Below, in pieces: positions 33,073-49,681 of a stretch of DNA of 64,000 nucleotides. How positions within the stretch are numbered: position 1 is the stretch's first letter; the number at the start of each line of letters is the position of its first letter. Under the pieces are notes generated by a model. The model was not told where the DNA came from, ran no database searches, and saw nothing but the letters and a program-made list of their open reading frames with translations. Location: positions 1 through 64,000 of the IMG/VR virus record IMGVR_UViG_3300044712_000810; one strand, written 5' to 3'. Position numbers and translations under genes: made by a program.

Positions 33073-33963
33073 ATGCTTAATGATGGATTTTATAAAAAAG
33101 TTGAAGATCCAAAATATTTAAAAAACATACTTTACGGCGATACAGACTCTTTGTTCCTTTGTATCCCAACTAAAACATCAGCAAAACAAATGTCAATTGA
33201 CGAAATTATTAAAATTTCAAAAGATACTGGTAAGAATATAAATGATTTAATTCAACAGTATATGGTTAAATATTTGTTTCCAAAAGCAAATATTGATCCT
33301 AATTTTAATAAGACTCAATTTAAAAACGAAATGATTATGTCGAGTATCATGTTCCTCGACGTTAAAAAACAGTATGCATATAAACTACTAGTAAAAGAAG
33401 GTGTTGTACTAACAGAACCTGAAACCAAATATACCGGTATTCAGATTGTTAGAACCAATACTGCAAAAATTACTAGTAAACTTTTAAGAGAAATGATTGA
33501 GGATGTTATTCTTAATCCACAAATTACAAGAAAACAACGTATTCCAAAACTTATTGAACTCGTTGATGCAAAACACAAAGTATTTAATGATTTTGCAGAC
33601 GCATGTGATTTTACCGAAATAGGTATTCCATGTAAATGGCAAAAACAAGATCAACATATTATGGGAATGAAATTATATAATTTCATAATGGAGAAAGAGA
33701 CATTTAACTTAGGATCTTCCGGAAGATTCATCTATTGCAAATTTCATGATACTAGAACATTAAATCTTTCCGGTATAGATACTGATAAATTAAACGGTAT
33801 AGTCGTACCATATTCATATGATAAAGATAAACTTCGTGATGCAATGGCTAAATATAAAATCATCATCGATAGACAAACACAATGGGACACACTGTACTCC
33901 AAGACTTGTCAACGCTTAACTGAACTAGTAAAACTGATCGATAAGAGATCAGAAGGGAAGTAA
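33073..33963 (+). CDS. Family-B DNA polymerase, C-terminal part (palm motif C + thumb)
   Basis: ILYGDTDSLF, KKQYAY, KYTGIQIVRTNT. Confidence 0.9.
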   Translation: MLNDGFYKKVEDPKYLKNILYGDTDSLFLCIPTKTSAKQMSIDEIIKISKDTGKNINDLIQQYMVKYLFPKANIDPNFNKTQFKNEMIMSSIMFLDVKKQYAYKLLVKEGVVLTEPETKYTGIQIVRTNTAKITSKLLREMIEDVILNPQITRKQRIPKLIELVDAKHKVFNDFADACDFTEIGIPCKWQKQDQHIMGMKLYNFIMEKETFNLGSSGRFIYCKFHDTRTLNLSGIDTDKLNGIVVPYSYDKDKLRDAMAKYKIIIDRQTQWDTLYSKTCQRLTELVKLIDKRSEGK

Positions 33964-34626: not shown

Positions 34627-34701
34627 TCTGGGTTAGTTCAGTGGCAGAACGTCTGGCTGTTAACCAGAATGTCGGGAGTTCGAACCTCTCACCCAGAGCC
34701 A
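34627..34701 (+). tRNA. tRNA-Asn(GTT)
   Basis: Cloverleaf: TCTGGGT/ACCCAGA, anticodon arm TCTGG-CTGTTAA-CCAGA, T arm GGGAG-TTCGAAC-CTCTC, G73, encoded CCA. Confidence 0.95.
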
Positions 34702-37174: not shown

Positions 37175-37221
37175 CACAAGAATGGGGGTGGAAACACCCC
37201 CATTTTTAATATTCTCTTTTT

Positions 37222-37233
37222 TCATATAGAAAT
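37222..37233 (+). promoter_or_regulatory. TCATATAGAAAT putative promoter of the Ro60/ncRNA operon
   Basis: Follows the terminator GGGGGTG-GAAA-CACCCC-ATTTTT. Confidence 0.7.
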
Positions 37234-37359
37234 AATACCAATGCGCGAGTAACCGTGTCGCCAACTTTTGGTTACATGCGTAAACCATTGATGTGCAAAC
37301 ATCGATGGTTTTATTGCACAGTCCTCCTGTTTAATTTTAACAACCTTTGGGAGGTTTAA

Positions 37360-38982
37360 ATGAAGAAAGTCGTAAAATCAGTGGAAAAGGCAATTTACAA
37401 AAACCCAACAGCGACAGCAGACACTGTCAACAAACACGGCACAAAAGCTTGGACTCAGTCCGATAGCACTCGTGTCGATCAGATCATGATGACAGGTACA
37501 TTTGGAAACTCGTTCTACGCCTCCGGCGACGAACTTGTGAAAGATGCTATCGAAGTCATCGAACGCGTGGCAAAGAAAGATCCTGCGCTGCTTGCATCAA
37601 CCATCGTGAAGGGTCGTAATGACGGCTTCATCAGAACTGCACCGTTAATCGGTCTAACAGTTCTATCGATGCACGCTCCAGCTGAATTTCGTAAAATCTT
37701 CAACGATACCGTGAAAACCGGTAACGACCTTGAAGACTTCATGAAGTTCGCATCAACCATGCGTAAAGGATTCGGAACTGCAATCAAGAAAGCTATGTGG
37801 GGATGGCTGTTTGAAAAGGTAACACCTTTCTACGCAACCAAATACACAAAGCAAATCGCGAACGCAATTTCCGTTTCGCATCCAAGAACACTCGATCCTA
37901 TCTTCGATTACATCATGCAGCACACTGCTGGTAAATCGAGAAACTATGCGGCTGCTCTCAAAAAGTATCCTGCCCTTCGTGGTATGGAAGAAGCAAAGGT
38001 AGCAGTTCAAAACAAAGACTGGAAGAAAGCCCAGAAACTAATCGACGAGCACAGACTCGATCCGACTACTTTTCTTGGCATGGGAACAATGACAAAAGAT
38101 GTGTGGAAATCACTTTCTGCACAATTTGGTGTCATGGCATATCTCAAATACCTTAACAAGATCGTCCGCGAGGATGCTCTTGATCCTAAGGTAATGAGAG
38201 AAAAGCTAAAACCTGAAGTCCTGAACAAGGCAAAGGTTTTCCCATTCCGTCTTTACATCGCAAGAGAAAACATCCAGAACGCAACAGTTCGTGATCATCT
38301 CGCCCAAGTCCTCGACGACTACGGCAAGATTTACAACTGGGAATCTTGGGGTGACAAGCAATTTGTCATCGCACCAGACGTTTCTGGATCAATGGTTCAA
38401 GCTGTACGTGGATCTAAACTAACTCCAGCCACAGTTGCTGGTATGTTCAGTGGATTCCTGTACAAATTCATTCCAGGAAGTATTCTTCTTCCTTGGAGCA
38501 CTGAAGTTCGTCCGAACCTCGTGCGTCCTCGTCAGGACTCTGTTCTGACACATATCGAAAGTATTGCCCGTGCAAACGGCGGTGGAACAGCAATGGCTTC
38601 ACCGATCGATCACATGATCCGCAATAAGATCAAGTGTGACTACTTCATCGGAATCACCGATTCTGAAGAATGGTCTGCACCTGTGACCAGATATGCTTGG
38701 GGCGGACGTAGATCCGATGAAAGACAGTGGATTGATGCTTGGACTGAATACAGAAATAAAGTCAACAAGAATGCGAAAGCAATTCTTCTTCGTGTGGATG
38801 GATACCCAACACAGCCATTCGATGACAAAACAGCTAAAGAAAATGGAATTTACCAGATCTTCGGTTGGTCCGACAACGTACTCAAATACGTTGATTACGT
38901 GATCAATTCTGAAAAATATGTGGTAAAAGAAAAAGAAAAGAAAGTTGAAAAACTTGATAAATATGTAACTATCGAAAGATAG
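37360..38982 (+). CDS. Ro60/Rsr ortholog (TROVE + C-terminal vWA)
   Basis: TGTFGNSFYA, RNDGFIRTAP, FPFRLYIA, vWA MIDAS-like APDVSGSM, GGGTAMASP, ITDSEEW. Confidence 0.9.
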   Translation: MKKVVKSVEKAIYKNPTATADTVNKHGTKAWTQSDSTRVDQIMMTGTFGNSFYASGDELVKDAIEVIERVAKKDPALLASTIVKGRNDGFIRTAPLIGLTVLSMHAPAEFRKIFNDTVKTGNDLEDFMKFASTMRKGFGTAIKKAMWGWLFEKVTPFYATKYTKQIANAISVSHPRTLDPIFDYIMQHTAGKSRNYAAALKKYPALRGMEEAKVAVQNKDWKKAQKLIDEHRLDPTTFLGMGTMTKDVWKSLSAQFGVMAYLKYLNKIVREDALDPKVMREKLKPEVLNKAKVFPFRLYIARENIQNATVRDHLAQVLDDYGKIYNWESWGDKQFVIAPDVSGSMVQAVRGSKLTPATVAGMFSGFLYKFIPGSILLPWSTEVRPNLVRPRQDSVLTHIESIARANGGGTAMASPIDHMIRNKIKCDYFIGITDSEEWSAPVTRYAWGGRRSDERQWIDAWTEYRNKVNKNAKAILLRVDGYPTQPFDDKTAKENGIYQIFGWSDNVLKYVDYVINSEKYVVKEKEKKVEKLDKYVTIER

Positions 38983-39031
38983 TTTTCAGGTGGGAGTTAT
39001 TACACTCCCACCAACTACAAATTTCTAAATT

Positions 39032-39100
39032 TGCAAGGTATCAGTAATAAGTTTCAACGCACTGTTAAAGCCAAAAAGGCTTATTACATTAGTCCTTGCG
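39032..39100 (+). ncRNA. Scaffold RNA unit 1 (Asn GUU anticodon-loop cargo)
   Basis: GCAAGG/CCTTGC closing stem; GTAATAAGTTT/AGGCTTATTAC inner stem; CAAC-GC-A-CTGTTAA-A-GC. Confidence 0.8.
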
Positions 39101-39115
39101 CTTCTTTCAAATTTT

Positions 39116-39338
39116 GGAAGGTATCAGAAAAACGTTCAACGCACATGAAATGCACCCGAGTTAACACTCGTGTAGGTTCGAGTCCTACCCTTGGCACCAA
39201 TCATGGGGACCATCTAGAGAGAAAGTCGAAAGACCGCTTCAAAAGATAGCAATTAAATTTGCAGGTACCCTCCAAATTTTGCCGAGGTGGCGGAATTGGT
39301 AGACGCAGGTAAAAACAATGTTTTTCATCAGTCCTTCC
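39116..39338 (+). ncRNA. Scaffold RNA unit 2 enclosing a circularly permuted tRNA-Leu-like body
   Basis: GGAAGG/CCTTCC; 3' half 39154-39199 (variable arm, T arm, CCTTGGC-A-CCA) precedes 5' half 39281-39310 (GCCGAGGTGGCGGAATTGGTAGACGCA). Confidence 0.85.
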
Positions 39339-39347
39339 GACTTATTT

Positions 39348-39425
39348 TGTGGAGTAGAGTAGTCTGGTCTAACTCGTAGGTCTCATAAGCCTAGTACACA
39401 GGTTCAAATCCTGTCTCCGCAACCA
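39348..39425 (+). tRNA. tRNA-Met(CAT), initiator-like sequence
   Basis: TGTGGAG/CTCCGCA, D stem GAGT/ACTC, TAGGT-CTCATAA-GCCTA, ACAGG-TTCAAAT-CCTGT, ACCA end. Confidence 0.9.
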
Positions 39426-39429
39426 CTTT

Positions 39430-39523
39430 TGAAAGGTAATCCGACAAGATTCAACGTTACCATTATACGTCTATCGGGCAACTCGACGCCCGATCGAAAC
39501 CGTCTTGTCATCTAGTCCTTTCA
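39430..39523 (+). ncRNA. Scaffold RNA unit 3
   Basis: TGAAAGG/CCTTTCA; GACAAGAT/GTCTTGTC; TTCAACG; insert hairpin ATCGGGC/GCCCGAT. Confidence 0.8.
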
Positions 39524-39529
39524 CCCTTT

Positions 39530-39592
39530 TGCAAGGTAAATGAATCTGGATTCAACGGAAAACTGAAAACACCAGATTTAACAGTCCTTGCA
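39530..39592 (+). ncRNA. Scaffold RNA unit 4 (minimal; possible Phe GAA loop CTGAAAA)
   Basis: TGCAAGG/CCTTGCA; AATCTGG/CCAGATT; TTCAACG. Confidence 0.8.
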
Positions 39593-39612
39593 CTTAAAAT
39601 TTCTCACAACTT

Positions 39613-39757
39613 TTGAGAGGTAACCCCGAGTAGGTTCAACGCTATATGGAAGCCGGTGTCATCGGTTCGAATCCGATCTCCTCCATCACAAATCTTTTGG
39701 GGGAGTAGCTCAGTCTGGTAGAGCACGAAAAACAATCTGCTCAATTAGTCCTCTCAA
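39613..39757 (+). ncRNA. Scaffold RNA unit 5 enclosing a circularly permuted tRNA-Ala-like body
   Basis: TTGAGAGG/CCTCTCAA; T arm ATCGG-TTCGAAT-CCGAT and CTCCTCC-A (39661-39685) precede GGGGGAGTAGCTCAGTCTGGTAGAGCAC (from 39699); G3:U70. Confidence 0.85.
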
Positions 39758-39771
39758 CTTTTAAAAATTTT

Positions 39772-39846
39772 GGTCTAGTAGCTTAATGGTAGAGCACCTG
39801 CCTGTCGAGCAGCAAGATGTCGGTTCAAATCCGATCTAGATCGCCA
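39772..39846 (+). tRNA. tRNA-Asp(GTC), atypical anticodon arm
   Basis: GGTCTAG/CTAGATC, loop CTGTCGA, GTCGG-TTCAAAT-CCGAT, G73 and CCA. Confidence 0.85.
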
Positions 39847-39851
39847 TCTTT

Positions 39852-39970
39852 TGCAAGGTAACCCCGTGTGGTTTCAACGGAAACTAACAAGTCATCAAAA
39901 CTGGTTACAGTAGGATTCGAAGCCTACAACACCTTCGGGTGAAACGAGCCACACAAACCATGTCCTTGCA
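39852..39970 (+). ncRNA. Scaffold RNA unit 6 (T-arm-like and UUCG hairpins)
   Basis: TGCAAGG/CCTTGCA; GTGTGGTTT/GAGCCACAC; GTAGG-ATTCGAAG-CCTAC; CACC-TTCG-GGTG. Confidence 0.8.
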
Positions 39971-39981
39971 CTTAAAATTTT

Positions 39982-40067
39982 GGGGATGTTACACAAGCGG
40001 CAACGTGACCTGGCTGTAACCCAGGTGCCTTCGGGCTTCAGAGGTTCGAGTCCTCTCTTCCCCACCA
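39982..40067 (+). tRNA. tRNA-Tyr(GTA)
   Basis: GGGGATG/CTTCCCC, CCTGG-CTGTAAC-CCAGG, long variable arm, AGAGG-TTCGAGT-CCTCT, ACCA. Confidence 0.92.
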
Positions 40068-40085
40068 TTATAATTTGGAGATATT

Positions 40086-40481
40086 ATGTTTGATTTCAAT
40101 AAATGCGACAATCCAAAAAAGCAAGGTAATATTGGAATTGGTATCGCAATCGCATGGTTCGTAAAAAATGGTTGTACCGTATCTATTCCATTAACAGATT
40201 GTCAAGAATATGATCTTGTCATCGATGATATTAATGGAAAATTATACAAAGTTCAAGTTAAAACTACAACATTTAAAGAATTTAATACTTATAAAATTAA
40301 CTTAAAAACCTGTGGTGGCAATCAAAGTTTTAATACAATTAAAAAATTCGATAAAACGAAAGTAGATTTATTATTCATTGTTACCTGTGAAGGTGATATG
40401 TATTTAATTCCAACAAATAAAATAACACAAACAAATTGTTTAAAACTTGGTGAAAAATATCAAGACTGTAAAGTTACTTAA
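40086..40481 (+). CDS. Free-standing PD-(D/E)XK endonuclease (I-Ssp6803I/PDDEXK_5-like)
   Basis: KQGNIG...VSIPL.D...YDLVID...LYKVQVKT...KVDLLFI. Confidence 0.8.
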   Translation: MFDFNKCDNPKKQGNIGIGIAIAWFVKNGCTVSIPLTDCQEYDLVIDDINGKLYKVQVKTTTFKEFNTYKINLKTCGGNQSFNTIKKFDKTKVDLLFIVTCEGDMYLIPTNKITQTNCLKLGEKYQDCKVT

Positions 40482-40494
40482 AATTTCCACTTAT

Positions 40495-40577
40495 TTGAAG
40501 GGTAAACCGACAAGTTTCAACGCTCATAACGTATTCGCGCCATCTTGCGAATCTAACTTGTCACGCAGTCCCTTCAA
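40495..40577 (+). ncRNA. Scaffold RNA unit 7 (Met CAU anticodon-loop cargo)
   Basis: TTGAAGGG/CCCTTCAA; GACAAGTT/AACTTGTC; CAAC-G-CTCATAA-C. Confidence 0.8.
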
Positions 40578-40583
40578 CTTTTT

Positions 40584-40654
40584 TGTGAGGTATCAGTAAT
40601 AAGTTTCAACGCCCCTTGCACGAGCCTAAAACGCTTATTACACAAGTCCTCACA
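40584..40654 (+). ncRNA. Scaffold RNA unit 8 (Ala UGC anticodon-loop cargo)
   Basis: TGTGAGG/CCTCACA; same inner stem as unit 1; GCCC-CTTGCAC-GAGC. Confidence 0.8.
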
Positions 40655-40671
40655 TTTAAATTTCCAAATTT

Positions 40672-40805
40672 TGGAAGGTATCAAGAAACATCCAACGTTA
40701 ACTCCAAACCGGGGGTTATGGTTCAAGTCCATACATTTTGCCAAATAAGGCAGTGTAATGTAATGTAGCATACCGGTTCAACGCAGTTTCTTAAAAGTCC
40801 TTCCA
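40672..40805 (+). ncRNA. Scaffold RNA unit 9 enclosing a permuted tRNA-Trp-like body
   Basis: TGGAAGG/CCTTCCA; CTCCAAA-CCGG, T arm TATGG-TTCAAGT-CCATA, closed acceptor hairpin, then D arm ATGT/GCAT and CCGGT. Confidence 0.75.
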
Positions 40806-40812
40806 CATTTTT

Positions 40813-40880
40813 TGCGAGGTATTCTTCCAGGATTCAACGATCCTCTAAATCGAAAACGACCCTGGATATCAGTCCTCGCG
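40813..40880 (+). ncRNA. Scaffold RNA unit 10 (CGAT-CCTCTAA-ATCG stem-loop, Arg UCU-like)
   Basis: TGCGAGG/CCTCGCG; TCCAGG/CCTGGA; TTCAACG. Confidence 0.8.
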
Positions 40881-40900
40881 ACTTTTTTAAGGAGAACCAC

Positions 40901-41077
40901 ATGTGTAAAGATGAATGCACTTGCGAAGTCAAGTGTCCAATCTGTCAAGAATTGATAGATAAACATGGTGGATTATATCCAAACCAAGAAACAATCAAAG
41001 CCATCGAAGAAGTTCGAAACGGCAAAACAAAAACATTTAATTCAGTTGAAGAGTTATTTAACGAATTACACAAATAA
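40901..41077 (+). CDS. 58-aa protein: Cys-rich N-terminus plus DinJ/RelB-type C-terminal toxin-binding segment (not in ORF track)
   Basis: AAGGAG RBS; hand translation MCKDECTCEVKCPICQELIDKHGGLYPNQETIKAIEEVRNGKTKTFNSVEELFNELHK; followed by terminator CGGGTC-TTCG-GACCC. Confidence 0.75.
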   Translation: MCKDECTCEVKCPICQELIDKHGGLYPNQETIKAIEEVRNGKTKTFNSVEELFNELHK

Positions 41078-41114
41078 CCGGGTCTTCGGACCCAATTTTT
41101 ATTTTTACCTAAAG

Positions 41115-41126
41115 TCATATAGAAAT
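41115..41126 (+). promoter_or_regulatory. TCATATAGAAAT putative promoter
   Basis: Follows the terminator at ~41079-41100. Confidence 0.65.
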
Positions 41127-41282
41127 AGTACAAATACCGAACTTTTTGTTTTTAATATTTGCAGTTTTTACATAGAAATATTTTATTAGAAGTATTGATT
41201 TATCAATACGACAAGATATGTAGTTCTTTGGATTTTGGCTCTCTCAAGGCGCATATCTTGTTGTTTTACTTTAGGAGGATTC

Positions 41283-41552
41283 ATGTCAATTACGCGTAGA
41301 GAAGTAACAAAAACTGTTATTGAGATGACGGATGTAACTTGTGATATTTGTGGTAAAACATATACTTTTGATGCAGATAAAAAACATGAAAATGATGATT
41401 GGATTGAAACGCAAGAATTTCATTATATAAGTTTTCGAGGCGGCTACGGCTCCATATTTGGAGACGGTGATACTGTAACCTGTGATATCTGTCAACATTG
41501 TTTAAAAGACAAGTTGGGAGAATATCTCAAAATCAATGAGGGAGATCTTTAA
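41283..41552 (+). CDS. Small zinc-finger-like hypothetical protein
   Basis: AGGAGG RBS; CDICG...CDICQHC. Confidence 0.7.
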   Translation: MSITRREVTKTVIEMTDVTCDICGKTYTFDADKKHENDDWIETQEFHYISFRGGYGSIFGDGDTVTCDICQHCLKDKLGEYLKINEGDL

Positions 41553-41645: not shown

Positions 41646-42173
41646 ATGAATTTCGTAATTGTATTAAACGCTAACTACGAAATACACCAGAAGGTTAGCG
41701 TAAAACAATGTCTAAGTATGATCAGGCGTCAAGTTGTTGAAGTTATTAAATACTCTGACAAAGTTATTACTACATGCAAAGAGAAGATTCAAATTCCTCT
41801 TATAGTACGTTTAATAACTGTAGTTAGAAAAGTATTTAAAAACAAGATACAATTCACAAAGAAAAACCTTTTTGTACGCGACCAATACATGTGTGCGTAC
41901 TGTGCCCAAAAATTCGAAAGTAAACAACTTTCGGTCGATCATATCCTTCCGGAATCGAGAGGAGGTCCGACTTCTTGGGAAAACTGTGTAACAGCCTGTG
42001 TCAAGTGTAACAACAAGAAAGACAACAAGACACCAAGAGAAGCCGGAATGTTTCTCAAATTCAAACCATTCGAACCAACCATAGCCGAATTCGTGAAACT
42101 AAAAGTAACACAAGACGGACTTGAAAAGTTTGTTAAAGAAATATTTGACCAACTTATGGACGAATGCAAATAA
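41646..42173 (+). CDS. HNH endonuclease (McrA-like)
   Basis: RDQYMCAYC...VDHILPESRGG...WENCVTACVKCNNKK. Confidence 0.92.
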   Translation: MNFVIVLNANYEIHQKVSVKQCLSMIRRQVVEVIKYSDKVITTCKEKIQIPLIVRLITVVRKVFKNKIQFTKKNLFVRDQYMCAYCAQKFESKQLSVDHILPESRGGPTSWENCVTACVKCNNKKDNKTPREAGMFLKFKPFEPTIAEFVKLKVTQDGLEKFVKEIFDQLMDECK

Positions 42174-42511: not shown

Positions 42512-42525
42512 ACTTGGAGTCAACC

Positions 42526-43629
42526 ATGTCGTGTCTGGATAAATGCGCATTTCTTATTCCATATACTCAAATAGAGGCAGGTGCACAAACACAATTGTGC
42601 AACTATTTAAAAGAACCATTTTGCCTCCGCGCAGCTGTAATGCCAGACATCCATACCGGATATGCGTTACCAGTTGGTGCGGTTGTATTGCTCGAAGGAG
42701 TAATATCACCAGCAGCAGTTGGTGTTGATATAGGTTGCGGAATGTGTTGTATTCGTACAGATGTTCCGATCAAACATATCAAAGGAAAAGAAGAAAAACT
42801 ATTTAAACAAATATATTCTACTATTCCAGTTGGATTTGGTAGTCATGCAAAAAAAAGAGACTATCCTGATTTCAAATCAGCAATACTGGATAAAAAACTG
42901 GATGCAGCAATAAATTTAAAATTAAAAGAACAACTTGGAACTCTCGGTGGTGGGAATCACTTTATTGAAATTGGTGAAACACGAGAAGGAAATATAGGAA
43001 TTACTATTCATAGTGGATCACGTAATGCTGGAAAGCAAATATGTGATCATTACTGTGCATTAGCTAAAAAAATTCATACTGAATTAAAAGGTGACTTTCT
43101 ATTCTTCGATCGTGATGAAGGAAAGGCATACTTTCAAGATATGAACTTTATGTTATCATATGCATTAGAAAATCGTTTAAATATGATGGTTGACATTCTT
43201 GATATACTTGGGTTGGATCAAAATCTACTCAAGGAAATCATTAATGAGAATCATAATCATGCCGAAGATCTAGATGGAAAGATTCTGCATCGTAAAGGTG
43301 CAACACCAGCAGCAAAAGACCAATTGGGTGTTATCCCAGGTAATATGCGCGACGGTGTATATATAACTAAAGGTCTTGGCAACGACAAATATCTGTCAAG
43401 TGCAAGTCATGGAGCCGGTCGTAAAGGTTCTAGAACTTGGGCAAAACAAAAAGATACAGTCGAAACATTTGCAAAACTAATGAATGGTATTGTCGCGAAA
43501 GTTGACAAACATACATTGGATGAAGCACCTTGGGCATATAAAAAGATCGAGGATGTAATTAAAGCACAAGAAGGAATTGTGGTTGATATTATCGATCACA
43601 TTAGACCAATCATTAACATCAAAGGATAG
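42526..43629 (+). CDS. rtcB: RtcB 2',3'-cyclic-phosphate/5'-OH RNA ligase
   Basis: MPDIHTG, VGVDIGCG, LGTLGGGNHFIE, IHSGSR, NENHNH, HRKGATP, SASHGAGR, DEAPWAYK. Confidence 0.95.
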   Translation: MSCLDKCAFLIPYTQIEAGAQTQLCNYLKEPFCLRAAVMPDIHTGYALPVGAVVLLEGVISPAAVGVDIGCGMCCIRTDVPIKHIKGKEEKLFKQIYSTIPVGFGSHAKKRDYPDFKSAILDKKLDAAINLKLKEQLGTLGGGNHFIEIGETREGNIGITIHSGSRNAGKQICDHYCALAKKIHTELKGDFLFFDRDEGKAYFQDMNFMLSYALENRLNMMVDILDILGLDQNLLKEIINENHNHAEDLDGKILHRKGATPAAKDQLGVIPGNMRDGVYITKGLGNDKYLSSASHGAGRKGSRTWAKQKDTVETFAKLMNGIVAKVDKHTLDEAPWAYKKIEDVIKAQEGIVVDIIDHIRPIINIKG

Positions 43630-47468: not shown

Positions 47469-47578
47469 CAAAAATTAAAGTGGGGGATGGCTTACGTCCC
47501 CCACGCAATTTGATTTCCCTTCTAAAGTTATAAAGAAATAGTTTTATAGTATAAAATCCTTGGGAATTGGGGGTAAGA

Positions 47579-49681
47579 GTGCAACAAATCCAATGTGACG
47601 ATTTAATTGACATGATTAAGTCCGACAAAATTTCTCCCTATCAATTTTATTCTACGGATATTGATTATCCACAGTATTACAGTGTTGAATATTTTTTAAA
47701 TCATCCTCATGATACTATTGAAAAAAATCAAAAGCTTAAAATCCTGTTTTTAGACATCGAAGTTTATATGCAAGGATCTACGAAATTCCCAAAACCAGAA
47801 GAAGGGGAATTTCCAGTAAGCGCAATTACAACATATTTAAATACAAAAAACAAGTTTACATCTTATTTTTTATTATTGAATAAAAACATACAAAAATTTC
47901 CAGTAGAAGATCTTGAAAAACAAAAACAAGATTATTTAAACACACTGTTACAAAATAAATATATAACAGACAAAGATACACTGGAAATTAAAATTTTTAC
48001 GAATGAAACAGAACTGTTAAAAACATTTTGGGAAGATGTAAAAACAGATGATCCAGCATGTTTAACAGGATGGAACAGCGATCAATTCGACTTACCGTAT
48101 CTATATTACAGAACGGTTAATGTATTAAATGGTGATGAAAAACGTGCTCATAAGTTAATGTCTAAATTTGGACAAGTTAAAGTTAGAGCATATGGTGGAA
48201 AAATAGTAATAGATTTTCCAGAATTTATTAATATGGATTTATATTACTTATATAAACCACGAGCAGAAGGTGGACTTGCACAAGGTAAAACTATGGCAAG
48301 TTATTCACTAGATTTCGTGTCAGAACAAATTTTAAAATTAAAGAAATTAGAATATAAAAATGAAGGTATGAGTCTGGATATGTTTTATGAAGCAGATCCA
48401 GTTGGATACTTATTATATAACATAATGGACTGTTGCCTAGTTAATTTACTTAACAATAAACTAGGACACCCAGACCGATATAACATGTTACGTCGTCTTA
48501 TGAAGACACCATTAGGTATTGCACTAAGAGGTCCTTCCGCATTATTTGATACATTCGTTTTACATGAATTGACAAGAAATGGTCAGGGCCCAAGATTTGG
48601 AATACTAGACGAAACAAGTGTAGAAATTCCAGAACATGAGATTAGACAAATACCTACACAAAAAACAAGTAAGAAAATTAAATGGGGAATTACTGAAATT
48701 TCCCAAGAAACTTATAGAGCGATAACTTGTAGATATCCTGGCGCATATGTTAAGGATTCTCCAGGTTTAATTTATGACTTGGATGATGGAATTCTAATTG
48801 ACTTAGATGCAACATCACTGTATCCAAGTATGATCTGTCAATATAATATCAGTTTCGATACATTCCATGGAAGAGTAATTGATCCTATTGTAACTAAATC
48901 ATTAGTAACAATTGATAATATTATTAAATCAAATGGACCAATTGCAGATAATATCTATATTGGTCTTTGTGACATGGCATCAAAATATGTATATAGAGAA
49001 GAATTTACAAATAAAAACGATTATACACAACAAGTGTATTATATCACATGTTATCTTATTAAGAAAATAAAAGAACATGGAAAAGAACTTGATAAGTTAT
49101 TTCATCCAAAAGACTATAAAGATTATATCGTACTTAAACGTTACTTGTTACCACTTATTGACTTACTTGAAGACTTATCATCAAACTCTGAAGAATATAA
49201 TACATTCGCCCATGACTATTTATTAATGGACAAAACTGATCCAGAAGTAAAAAGTTTATTAATAGTTGAAAATATAACGAAACCAACAATATGTGTTAAT
49301 CGTATTTTGGTCGAAGATTTTCCAAATTATCTAAAACAACAAAAACTAGTATTTACTCTAACCGGATGTTTATTCAATGAACACAATGACAAAATAAGTA
49401 TCTTTTATGAATTCCTTACAAACATGAAAAATATGCGCGATCAATATAAAAGAGATCGCGACAGTAATGAAGAAGGAAGCGAAAAGTATCGTTATTTTGA
49501 CATGATGCAGAATGCCACCAAAGTAACAATGAACTCAACATATGGTCTATATGGCATGAGTTTATTCAGATATAGTAATAAATGGTTGGCGAAAACTATT
49601 ACAATTTCCGGAAGATTAACACTAAAACTAGCACAAAGATTATCTGATGTATATATAAGTTCTCTCAAGGAAAATAATTAA
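47579..49681 (+). CDS. Family-B DNA polymerase, N-terminal part (3'-5' exonuclease, motifs A and B)
   Basis: FLDIEV (ExoI), GWNSDQFDLPYL (ExoII), YNIMD (ExoIII), DLDATSLYPS, KVTMNSTYG; lacks YGDTDS. Confidence 0.9.
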   Translation: MQQIQCDDLIDMIKSDKISPYQFYSTDIDYPQYYSVEYFLNHPHDTIEKNQKLKILFLDIEVYMQGSTKFPKPEEGEFPVSAITTYLNTKNKFTSYFLLLNKNIQKFPVEDLEKQKQDYLNTLLQNKYITDKDTLEIKIFTNETELLKTFWEDVKTDDPACLTGWNSDQFDLPYLYYRTVNVLNGDEKRAHKLMSKFGQVKVRAYGGKIVIDFPEFINMDLYYLYKPRAEGGLAQGKTMASYSLDFVSEQILKLKKLEYKNEGMSLDMFYEADPVGYLLYNIMDCCLVNLLNNKLGHPDRYNMLRRLMKTPLGIALRGPSALFDTFVLHELTRNGQGPRFGILDETSVEIPEHEIRQIPTQKTSKKIKWGITEISQETYRAITCRYPGAYVKDSPGLIYDLDDGILIDLDATSLYPSMICQYNISFDTFHGRVIDPIVTKSLVTIDNIIKSNGPIADNIYIGLCDMASKYVYREEFTNKNDYTQQVYYITCYLIKKIKEHGKELDKLFHPKDYKDYIVLKRYLLPLIDLLEDLSSNSEEYNTFAHDYLLMDKTDPEVKSLLIVENITKPTICVNRILVEDFPNYLKQQKLVFTLTGCLFNEHNDKISIFYEFLTNMKNMRDQYKRDRDSNEEGSEKYRYFDMMQNATKVTMNSTYGLYGMSLFRYSNKWLAKTITISGRLTLKLAQRLSDVYISSLKENN

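Follow-up and report, generated by a model that had tools for sequence, protein, structure and literature searches.

Results

ORF58 is a real gene of a jumbo phage

We analysed a window of 64,000 nucleotides, the first 64 kb of the virus record IMGVR_UViG_3300044712_000810, which is complete, 314,837 bp in length, bounded by direct terminal repeats and 33% in G+C content. The record was assembled from a rhizosphere metagenome and represents an uncultured jumbo phage; CheckV gave 100% completeness for the 314,837-bp virus genome. The subject of this study is ORF58, a short open reading frame (ORF) in this window whose C-terminal tail resembles the toxin-binding segment of the antitoxin DinJ and which may encode an orphan antitoxin. 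The elements of the gene, in window coordinates, are as follows.

40901-41077, + strand: ORF58, putative mini-antitoxin gene of 58 codons plus TAA; the protein starts MCKDECTCEVKCPIC
40890-40895, + strand: ribosome-binding site AAGGAG, read from the sequence, 5 nt upstream of the ORF58 ATG
40901-40972, + strand: head of ORF58, residues 1-24, with C2, C6, C8, C12, C15 and H22; putative zinc knuckle
40973-41074, + strand: tail of ORF58, residues 25-58, with PNQETIKAIEEVRNG (helix 29-39), a linker and SVEELFNEL (helix 49-56)
41080-41106, + strand: intrinsic terminator of ORF58, with a 5-bp GC stem, a TTCG loop and a T-run

Words resembling a ribosome-binding site precede 66 of the 114 long ORFs in this genome. 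The terminator hairpin GGGTC-TTCG-GACCC (41080-41093) starts 3 nt past the ORF58 stop codon and is followed by AATTTTTATTTTT. A codon-usage score was trained on the 114 long ORFs of the same genome and compared with windows of the same length. The in-frame score of ORF58 was 0.24, at the 22nd percentile of the same-length windows from the long ORFs (mean 0.33, sd 0.16 for true genes), and it exceeded the score of every off-frame window (mean -0.87); the other five frames of ORF58 scored from -0.18 to -1.35. An earlier note on this DNA had described a 58-residue ORF with a strong ribosome-binding site and its own terminator, and the AAGGAG, the hairpin with its T-run and the codon score were all present. 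The same note had called the ORF unannotated, which did not hold, as gene callers had already predicted an identical 58-residue protein, kept in a public protein collection with no name and no Pfam domain. These results demonstrate that ORF58 is a real gene with phage-like codon usage, and it is presumably translated.

Homology of the ORF58 tail to the RelB/DinJ C-terminus

The Pfam RelB model (PF04221) matched ORF58 with an E-value of 3.1e-4 and 21.1 bits, residues 25-56 aligning with profile positions 51-82 of 82. When the whole genome was searched in six frames with PF04221, the ORF58 site was the sole match in 315 kb (genome-wide E 3.5e-4). An exhaustive phmmer search of ORF58 over 1.84 billion representatives retrieved ten further proteins at E<1e-3. 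Six of them are proteins of 50-62 residues, referred to here as minis, that share the tail PNxETxxAIxE..G..tFNSVEELFxxL, and in a seventh, an HTH_37 protein, the tail forms the C-terminus. A profile of eight minis, run against 5.8 billion proteins, retrieved 104, about 65 of which are PF04221 RelB/DinJ proteins of 80-108 residues (E 2e-8 to 1e-3). The mini-family profile also matched residues 56-87 of a solved DinJ, PDB 9lew_A (E 1.1e-4), and gave a weak match to 3bpq_A (E 0.53).

Using hhalign, residues 26-57 of ORF58 were aligned to residues 53-85 of E. coli DinJ (MG1655, locus L042). The profile of minis only gave E 4.9e-4 at a probability of only 32%, and a profile also holding full-length members gave 94%. 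The earlier note had drawn a parallel between this C-terminus and that of E. coli DinJ; the DinJ string that it gave was correct, and hhalign returned the same register. A tblastn search of ORF58 against phage records found just three weak DinJ matches, in Zymomonas records (E 0.2-0.6), the ESM Atlas feature search gave a best score of 0.80 with nameless clusters and no lead, and PADLOC assigned no family to ORF58.

A previous report showed that alpha4 of DinJ (residues 77-86) is the chief mediator of YafQ binding and that its deletion abolishes suppression (PMC12301738). This segment aligns with SVEELFNEL of ORF58, in which the hydrophobic (V)xxLFxxL face is retained. On these alignments, we regard the tail of ORF58 as established to be a true homologue of alpha3-alpha4 of DinJ/RelB, the toxin-binding element. 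Tails of the RelB/DinJ type occur joined to ribbon-helix-helix (RHH), CopG, HTH_37, ABC-3C MC6/7 or CxxC heads, or headless, and the tail behaves as a portable module. Among the traits of the RelB/DinJ family, ORF58 has the C-terminal segment and lacks the RHH domain, a score above the family threshold and an adjacent toxin. We have filed it as an apparent tail-only derivative of the RelB/DinJ lineage and not as a canonical member.

Two metagenomic proteins among the ten phmmer matches (P0004 and P0009) carry two or three tandem copies of the tail separated by low-complexity linkers, and might be multivalent toxin binders. A 2,696-residue match (P0003, E 1e-7) was dropped as a DUF11-repeat surface protein whose match was driven by repeats.

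Tail-bearing relatives pair with YafQ

The neighbours of every tail-bearing protein with fetchable DNA were inspected. In 18 locus groups a two-part tail, consisting of the PNxxT helix and the last helix, was accompanied by a recognisable neighbouring toxin, and this toxin was YafQ_toxin (PF15738) in 18 of 18. The YafQ_toxin gene lies directly 3' of the gene with the two-part tail, often overlapping it by 4-11 nt. The following had a YafQ_toxin neighbour.

P0006: 60 aa, CPIC head; neighbour matched at E 6e-24
P0065: CxxC head, called at 106 aa
P0040: 49 aa, headless; neighbour found in three contigs
P0079: 59 aa
L022 and L023-25/28: two groups of viral contigs
Six genome loci in four groups: Arenicellales, Fusobacterium, Acidobacteriaceae and Symbiobacter
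Eight further metagenome groups

No toxin family other than YafQ adjoined a two-part tail in any locus inspected. The earlier note had named YafQ, RelE and YoeB as candidate partners; the neighbours of the relatives narrow this to YafQ (PF15738), the toxin in all 18 toxin-paired groups.

AbrB/SpoVT-headed Aminicenantes-like proteins (L032, L036-L038, L054-L082) carry the final helix only (GRVKTFNSVEELF) and no PNxxT. Their genes are followed by RelE/ParE-like genes of 93 aa, and both frames appear fused in L085. The final helix alone was dropped as a marker of YafQ, because these AbrB-headed FNSVEELF proteins adjoin RelE/ParE-like genes. Since proteins with only the last helix pair with RelE/ParE, it is the PNxxT helix together with the last helix that marks the YafQ-binding type.

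ORF58 is an orphan in the complete phage genome

The complete 314,837-bp genome was searched with toxin models that included PF15738, PF05016, PF06769, PF05015 and PF05973, each of which matched in control genomes, and contained no match to the YafQ, ParE/RelE, YoeB, HigB-like or Gp49 models. A search of the genome with one natural YafQ protein gave no match, and a YafQ hidden Markov model (HMM) run over all of its 2,768 frames of at least 40 aa gave nothing significant (best E 0.019). The tail motif is present once in the whole genome. The earlier statement that no cognate toxin is nearby was borne out, and the model, protein and HMM searches extend it to the complete genome, in which ORF58 is an orphan.

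Tail proteins with no toxin recur in phage or viral contigs that form four further groups.

P0008: one sequence shared by 24 contigs, the longest of 180 kb
P0005: close to a capsid gene, which lies a few genes downstream
L029 (IMG/VR): adjoining a YspA/SLOG gene
L026/L027:2276-2599 (IMG/VR viral contigs): tail fused to an ABC-3C MC6/MC7 'middle component', with no downstream toxin gene

The Cys-rich head of ORF58

Comparisons with PF04221 and TIGR02384 gave no RHH match in residues 1-24 of ORF58. The earlier note had claimed that the RHH part is replaced by a Cys-rich head, and this agrees with the alignment, in which only PF04221 positions 51-82 have a counterpart and C2, C6, C8, C12, C15 and H22 occupy the head. 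A CxxC stands 7-13 residues ahead of the PN motif in ORF58 and in P0002, P0005, P0006, P0008, P0010 and P0065, and P0007 carries CxC instead; CxxC or CxC precedes the tail in six of the seven mini-like phmmer matches at E<1e-3. Two of the CxxC-headed relatives, P0006 and P0065, are YafQ-paired.

Most CxxC-headed homologues have those two cysteines only, and the heads of ORF58 and P0007 are richer. A potential four-ligand set in ORF58 consists of C6/C8 and C12/C15 (CxCxxxCxxC), with C2 and H22 in addition. Since most homologues have a single CxxC, the complete four-ligand site is not a family trait. The CPIC of ORF58 begins helix 1 (residues 13-22), and the head probably forms a small zinc knuckle that caps this helix. 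In the relatives with two cysteines, the CxxC might bridge two chains in place of the dimerising RHH.

Predicted structure and complex with YafQ

The AlphaFold2 model of ORF58, made with an alignment of 23 sequences, had a mean pLDDT (predicted local distance difference test) of 83, with helices at residues 13-22, 29-39 and 49-56 and a disordered N-terminus (residues 1-6 below 50). ORF58 was then modelled with the 88-residue YafQ that adjoins P0040 (L014). The ipSAE of this pair was 0.47 (median of three runs), and that of the best control was 0.12. Of 78 solved complexes, 51 reach the mark used for this score, as do 2 of 108 mismatched pairs; passes at or below 0.60 comprise only 5 of the 78 solved complexes but all 4 passing mismatches. 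The predicted contacts with YafQ involve residues 12-56 of ORF58, that is, helix 1 and the entire tail; those assigned to the tail element span residues 22-56. The complex prediction with a YafQ-family toxin proposed in the earlier note therefore favoured the pair over the controls, and at the grade of this score it lends weak support to binding between ORF58 and YafQ; it fits the hypothesis but does not amount to evidence for binding inside a cell.

ORF58 appears to close a Ro60-RNA transcription unit

The surroundings of ORF58 contain the following features.

34627-34701: tRNA-Asn(GTT), 4.7 kb upstream
37203-37234, + strand: promoter-like element (TTTAATATT, ~9 nt, tttCATATAGAAATA), 126 nt upstream of the Ro60 ATG
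37360-38982, + strand: Ro60 (Rsr) orthologue, first gene of the apparent unit; Pfam vWA_Ro60 E 3e-13, TROVE E 1.6e-6
39033-40879, + strand: RNA array (1.85 kb) of ten Y-RNA-like two-stem modules, U1-U10, recognised by repeat families and folds
39772-39846: tRNA-Asp(GTC)
39982-40067: tRNA-Tyr(GTA)
40086-40481: PD-(D/E)XK ORF (PDDEXK_5, E 6e-18), homing-endonuclease-like, splitting the RNA array
40814-40879, + strand: last RNA module, U10, forming the 5' leader of ORF58; its 3' stem ends 21 nt before the ATG
41116-41127, + strand: next promoter-like motif, CATATAGAAATA, 10 nt past the T-run of the ORF58 terminator
41259-41552: Zn-ribbon protein of 97 aa with two CDIC motifs, phrog_5435; first gene of the following unit
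41646-42173: HNH endonuclease, between ORF58 and RtcB
42514-43629, + strand: RtcB RNA ligase (Pfam RtcB E 3e-80), in the neighbouring unit

The modules of the array are interleaved with tRNA-Met, tRNA-Asp and tRNA-Tyr. Each runs in the order UUUU, a 6-nt stem, UA, an inner stem, UUCAACG and an insert of 25-188 nt, followed by the partner of the inner stem, AGU, the partner of the outer stem and RACUU. The outer stem is complementary at 6 of 6 positions in 10 of 10 modules with seven different sequences, indicating covariation, and the minimum free energy folds share one common architecture. RNAalifold on six units gave 7 pairs, of which 3 have compensatory changes and 0 are broken. Module U5 is a sub-threshold YrlA match (36 bits), and two other modules contain tRNA-like T-arms. 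No Rfam family covers the repeated frame of the modules, and an Rfam scan of 40470-40910 gave nothing credible. The ORF58 region is free of the repeat signature of the array. Lying just downstream of Ro60, the modules seem to form a Y-RNA-like, Ro-binding set of unusual size. Module U2 also contains the 3' half of a tRNA-like sequence, its CCA end encoded (39173-39199), which ARAGORN did not call.

The promoter-like element (TTTAATATT, ~9 nt, CATATAGAAATA) is found 79 times in the genome (59 times on the + strand), and its sites have an upstream box in common. In the window its core motif occurs at 15 sites, 14 on the + strand, against 1.9 expected, and 0 of 100 shuffles reached 15; examples are at 37223, 41116, 45252 and 54212. 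Often a GC hairpin and its T-run come immediately before the element, and a ribosome-binding site and ATG follow at 20-40 nt. The element probably serves as promoter in a transcription programme specific to the phage, and it delimits the transcription units. Between the sites at 37203 and 41116 there is no copy with 0-1 mismatches, and one match with 2 mismatches lies inside the Ro60 gene. When the + strand was scanned for terminators from 38900, near the end of Ro60, to 42600, the first site was the one behind ORF58.

On these signals ORF58 appears to come last among the cistrons of a unit that runs from promoter to terminator and holds Ro60, ten Y-RNA-like modules and three tRNAs, and the following unit in this model would hold the Zn-ribbon ORF, HNH, ORF115 and RtcB. 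The earlier claim that ORF58 closes the RNA array agrees with the position of U10, which ends 21 nt before the ATG, and with the sole + strand terminator-like site of 38900-41080 being behind ORF58. The same note had proposed co-expression with an RNA-repair array. Co-transcription with Ro60 and the RNAs is likely from these signals; a functional tie to RNA repair is conjectural, and RtcB lies in the next unit of this model. No tRNA genes were found near other phage-borne orphan minis (eight loci, 1.6-8 kb fetched), and the link between ORF58 and the RNA array is particular to this phage. A shared transcript of ORF58, Ro60 and the RNAs by itself establishes no functional link.

The island around ORF58 resembles a hotspot for mobile endonuclease genes (PDDEXK_5, HNH). 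Elsewhere in the window, matches to family-B DNA polymerase are split over two ORFs 13.6 kb apart, with profile positions 218-345 at 33 kb (33073-33963) and the exonuclease domain with profile positions 102-198 at 47.5 kb (47567-49681). The polymerase gene may be split or rearranged.

Discussion

E. coli DinJ (PDB 4Q2U; DinJ 9lew) and ORF58 share the tail, with a PNxxT-capped alpha3, a Gly turn and the LFxxL face of alpha4. DinJ has an RHH domain for DNA binding and dimerisation, whereas ORF58 has a 24-residue Cys-rich head there; since ORF58 is without RHH, autorepression is impossible. DinJ also has an adjacent toxin, whereas none adjoins ORF58 and none is recognised in the phage. The YafQ-paired minis P0006, P0040, P0065 and P0079 have the same tail and, except for P0065 (106 aa), a length of 49-60 aa like that of ORF58, and in P0006 and P0065 a CxxC is placed as in ORF58, 9-13 residues ahead of the PN motif. 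These minis overlap or abut a YafQ_toxin gene, whereas ORF58 stands alone and has three extra cysteines.

Antitoxins with a reduced or metal-binding architecture are known. Archaeal RelB is small, has no folded DNA-binding domain and neutralises its RelE-type toxin by wrapping around it. Such proteins (aRelB-aRelE of Pyrococcus horikoshii; RelB3 of Methanocaldococcus jannaschii, PDB 3BPQ) are a precedent for the sufficiency of a tail, but they are toxin-adjacent and non-phage, have no Cys head and show no significant sequence similarity to ORF58. MqsA, the antitoxin of the RelE-fold toxin MqsR, carries a zinc-binding CxxC...CxxC module in its toxin-binding half. However, its fold is unrelated, it has a helix-turn-helix DNA-binding domain, and no sequence similarity to ORF58 was detected.

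Orphan antitoxins of phages have been reported, namely T4 Dmd, which acts against RnlA/LsoA, and the DarG-like NADAR protein AdfN, which acts against DarT1 (PMC7438911, PMC11825919). The logic proposed for ORF58 is the same, in that a toxin-less phage gene stands in for a host antitoxin; ORF58 is phage-encoded with no cognate toxin and resembles the neutralising part of an antitoxin. Dmd shares no homology with the antitoxins of the host and AdfN is a damage-reversing enzyme, whereas ORF58 would bind its target stoichiometrically through a segment that comes from the host antitoxin itself, and the target would be a RelE-superfamily toxin. We found no published report of a phage-borne protein with a RelB/DinJ tail or of such a binder directed at the RelE superfamily. 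The idea of a phage orphan antitoxin is therefore already known, and the version with a RelB/DinJ tail is apparently new.

We put the probability at about 0.5 that ORF58 is an orphan, tail-only antitoxin of the DinJ type that has no DNA-binding domain and serves as a counter-defence against YafQ. The features of the gene, the homology of its tail, the exclusive YafQ pairing of this tail type elsewhere, the orphan status and the recurrence of orphan minis in other phages are observed here; translation of ORF58, zinc binding, its hold on a host YafQ, its action against a defence and the layout of the operon are inferred. In the proposed mechanism, the shut-off of host gene expression by the phage would let a labile host antitoxin of the DinJ type decay. 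The phage ORF58 protein would then replace the lost antitoxin on the freed YafQ-family toxin, a ribosome-dependent mRNA endonuclease, gripping it chiefly via the hydrophobic face of its last helix. The toxin would be kept inactive, and abortive infection would be prevented.

Several points weigh against this proposal. In the literature we met no example of a YafQ system that defends against phages. The locus is held by one DNA run, from a rhizosphere metagenome, and no RNA run is among the runs listed. Scans of IMG/VR with ORF58, Ro60 and the adjacent Zn-ribbon protein turned up no relative of the phage, nor did a megablast search with the locus among 50,697 phage records, which leaves the phage a singleton. 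The PF04221 score of 21.1 bits is 1.3 bits short of the gathering cut-off of 22.4, and among NCBIfam models only TIGR02384 matched (E 0.13; 12.5 bits against a threshold of 45.65); scores below these family thresholds are expected, as ORF58 has nothing to match half of the model. BLASTP of ORF58 against E. coli DinJ gave no alignment, because E. coli DinJ is too divergent from ORF58. Recognition between type II antitoxins and toxins is mostly pair-specific (PMC12301738), and therefore similarity within the tail family does not show binding of any host toxin. At a complex score of 0.47, a pass is wrong more often than it is right if the prior is not good, and the score may owe something to solved DinJ-YafQ complexes already known to the predictor. 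Orphans also occur outside phages, as ten non-phage locus groups bear the tail and have no recognisable toxin, for example P0106 (in a HicAB island), P0014, P0010, L049 and L075.

The tail may instead bind another host nuclease of the BECR fold, such as a colicin-E5/D-like anticodon nuclease or a multidomain RelE/ParE-superfamily defence toxin, and not a classical YafQ. The island would then act as one kit against ribotoxins, made up of the inhibitor, spare tRNAs, Ro60 with Y RNAs and RtcB. Colicin-E5-type anticodon nucleases share the BECR fold with RelE and YafQ, and they cut four tRNAs with GUN anticodons, three of which (Asn, Asp and Tyr) this phage encodes. The ORF58 unit includes tRNA-Asp(GTC) and tRNA-Tyr(GTA), with tRNA-Asn(GTT) upstream and RtcB adjacent, and multidomain defence toxins are reported to contain RelE/ParE-superfamily domains (PMC11980606). 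However, the recognisable toxin beside the tail was a monodomain YafQ every time, the orphan minis of other phages had no tRNA genes within 1.6-8 kb, and the tRNA argument is conjectural; we consider this alternative unlikely. It is similarly improbable that ORF58 is an evolutionary leftover, a dinJ-yafQ fragment that has lost the toxin and the RHH and drifts in an endonuclease-rich accessory region with no role in infection. Mobile endonuclease genes do flank it (PDDEXK_5 at 40086-40481, HNH at 41646-42173), there is no measurable conservation in a singleton, and toxin-less copies occur in cellular contexts too. Against a leftover stand the intact frame, the strong ribosome-binding site, the terminator of its own and a codon usage as in the long phage genes. 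Its head is a distinct CxxC element common to YafQ-paired minis, not a truncated RHH, and orphan tails have been retained in four other phage or viral groups, one of them identical in 24 contigs.

ORF58 could also be the antitoxin of an unrecognised phage-borne toxin, the two making up a genuine toxin-antitoxin (TA) or addiction system whose toxin is novel or encoded elsewhere in the genome. The toxin search used only six Pfam models of the RelE superfamily, a single YafQ protein and a small HMM, and most genes of the 315-kb genome are without annotation. Type II pairs, though, are nearly always adjacent and co-transcribed, whereas ORF58 is bounded by non-coding RNA modules on its 5' side and by the terminator and a promoter-like motif on its 3' side; the next ORF is the Zn-ribbon protein phrog_5435, and none of the 2,768 frames was YafQ-like (best E 0.019). 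We regard a hidden pair of this kind as quite improbable. The shortness of ORF58 and the lack of a close homologue from a related phage would also suit a non-coding sequence, that is, a chance frame at the 3' end of the RNA array transcript. This is very hard to reconcile with a codon score above every off-frame window, the ideal spacing of the ribosome-binding site, the homology (genome-wide E 3.5e-4, profile E 2e-8) and the missing array repeat signature, and we give it hardly any weight.

A wider reading is possible, if on balance doubtful: several unrelated lytic phage lineages may carry stand-alone DinJ tails, free of a DNA-binding domain, that inhibit host toxins of the YafQ family or the BECR fold, in this phage within an anti-ribotoxin island. 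The components of that island would be the inhibitor, replacement tRNAs with GUN anticodons, Ro60 with ten Y-RNA-like modules and the RtcB ligase.

The role of RelE-superfamily type II systems such as DinJ-YafQ in phage defence is still debated. If the wider reading is true, it would describe the first counter-defence against a RelE-superfamily type II system and be indirect evidence that DinJ-YafQ modules act in phage defence; a phage gene consisting only of a YafQ-binding tail would be evidence for TA defence from the side of the phage. With 58 residues, no DNA-binding activity and no toxin partner, ORF58 would be an easy reagent for testing this. For the antitoxin family, the analysis shows that there are antitoxins of 44-62 residues genuinely paired with YafQ, which score too low to pass the family thresholds. 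Phages may thus hold a general, under-called class of anti-defence genes in the form of short orphan fragments of antitoxins.

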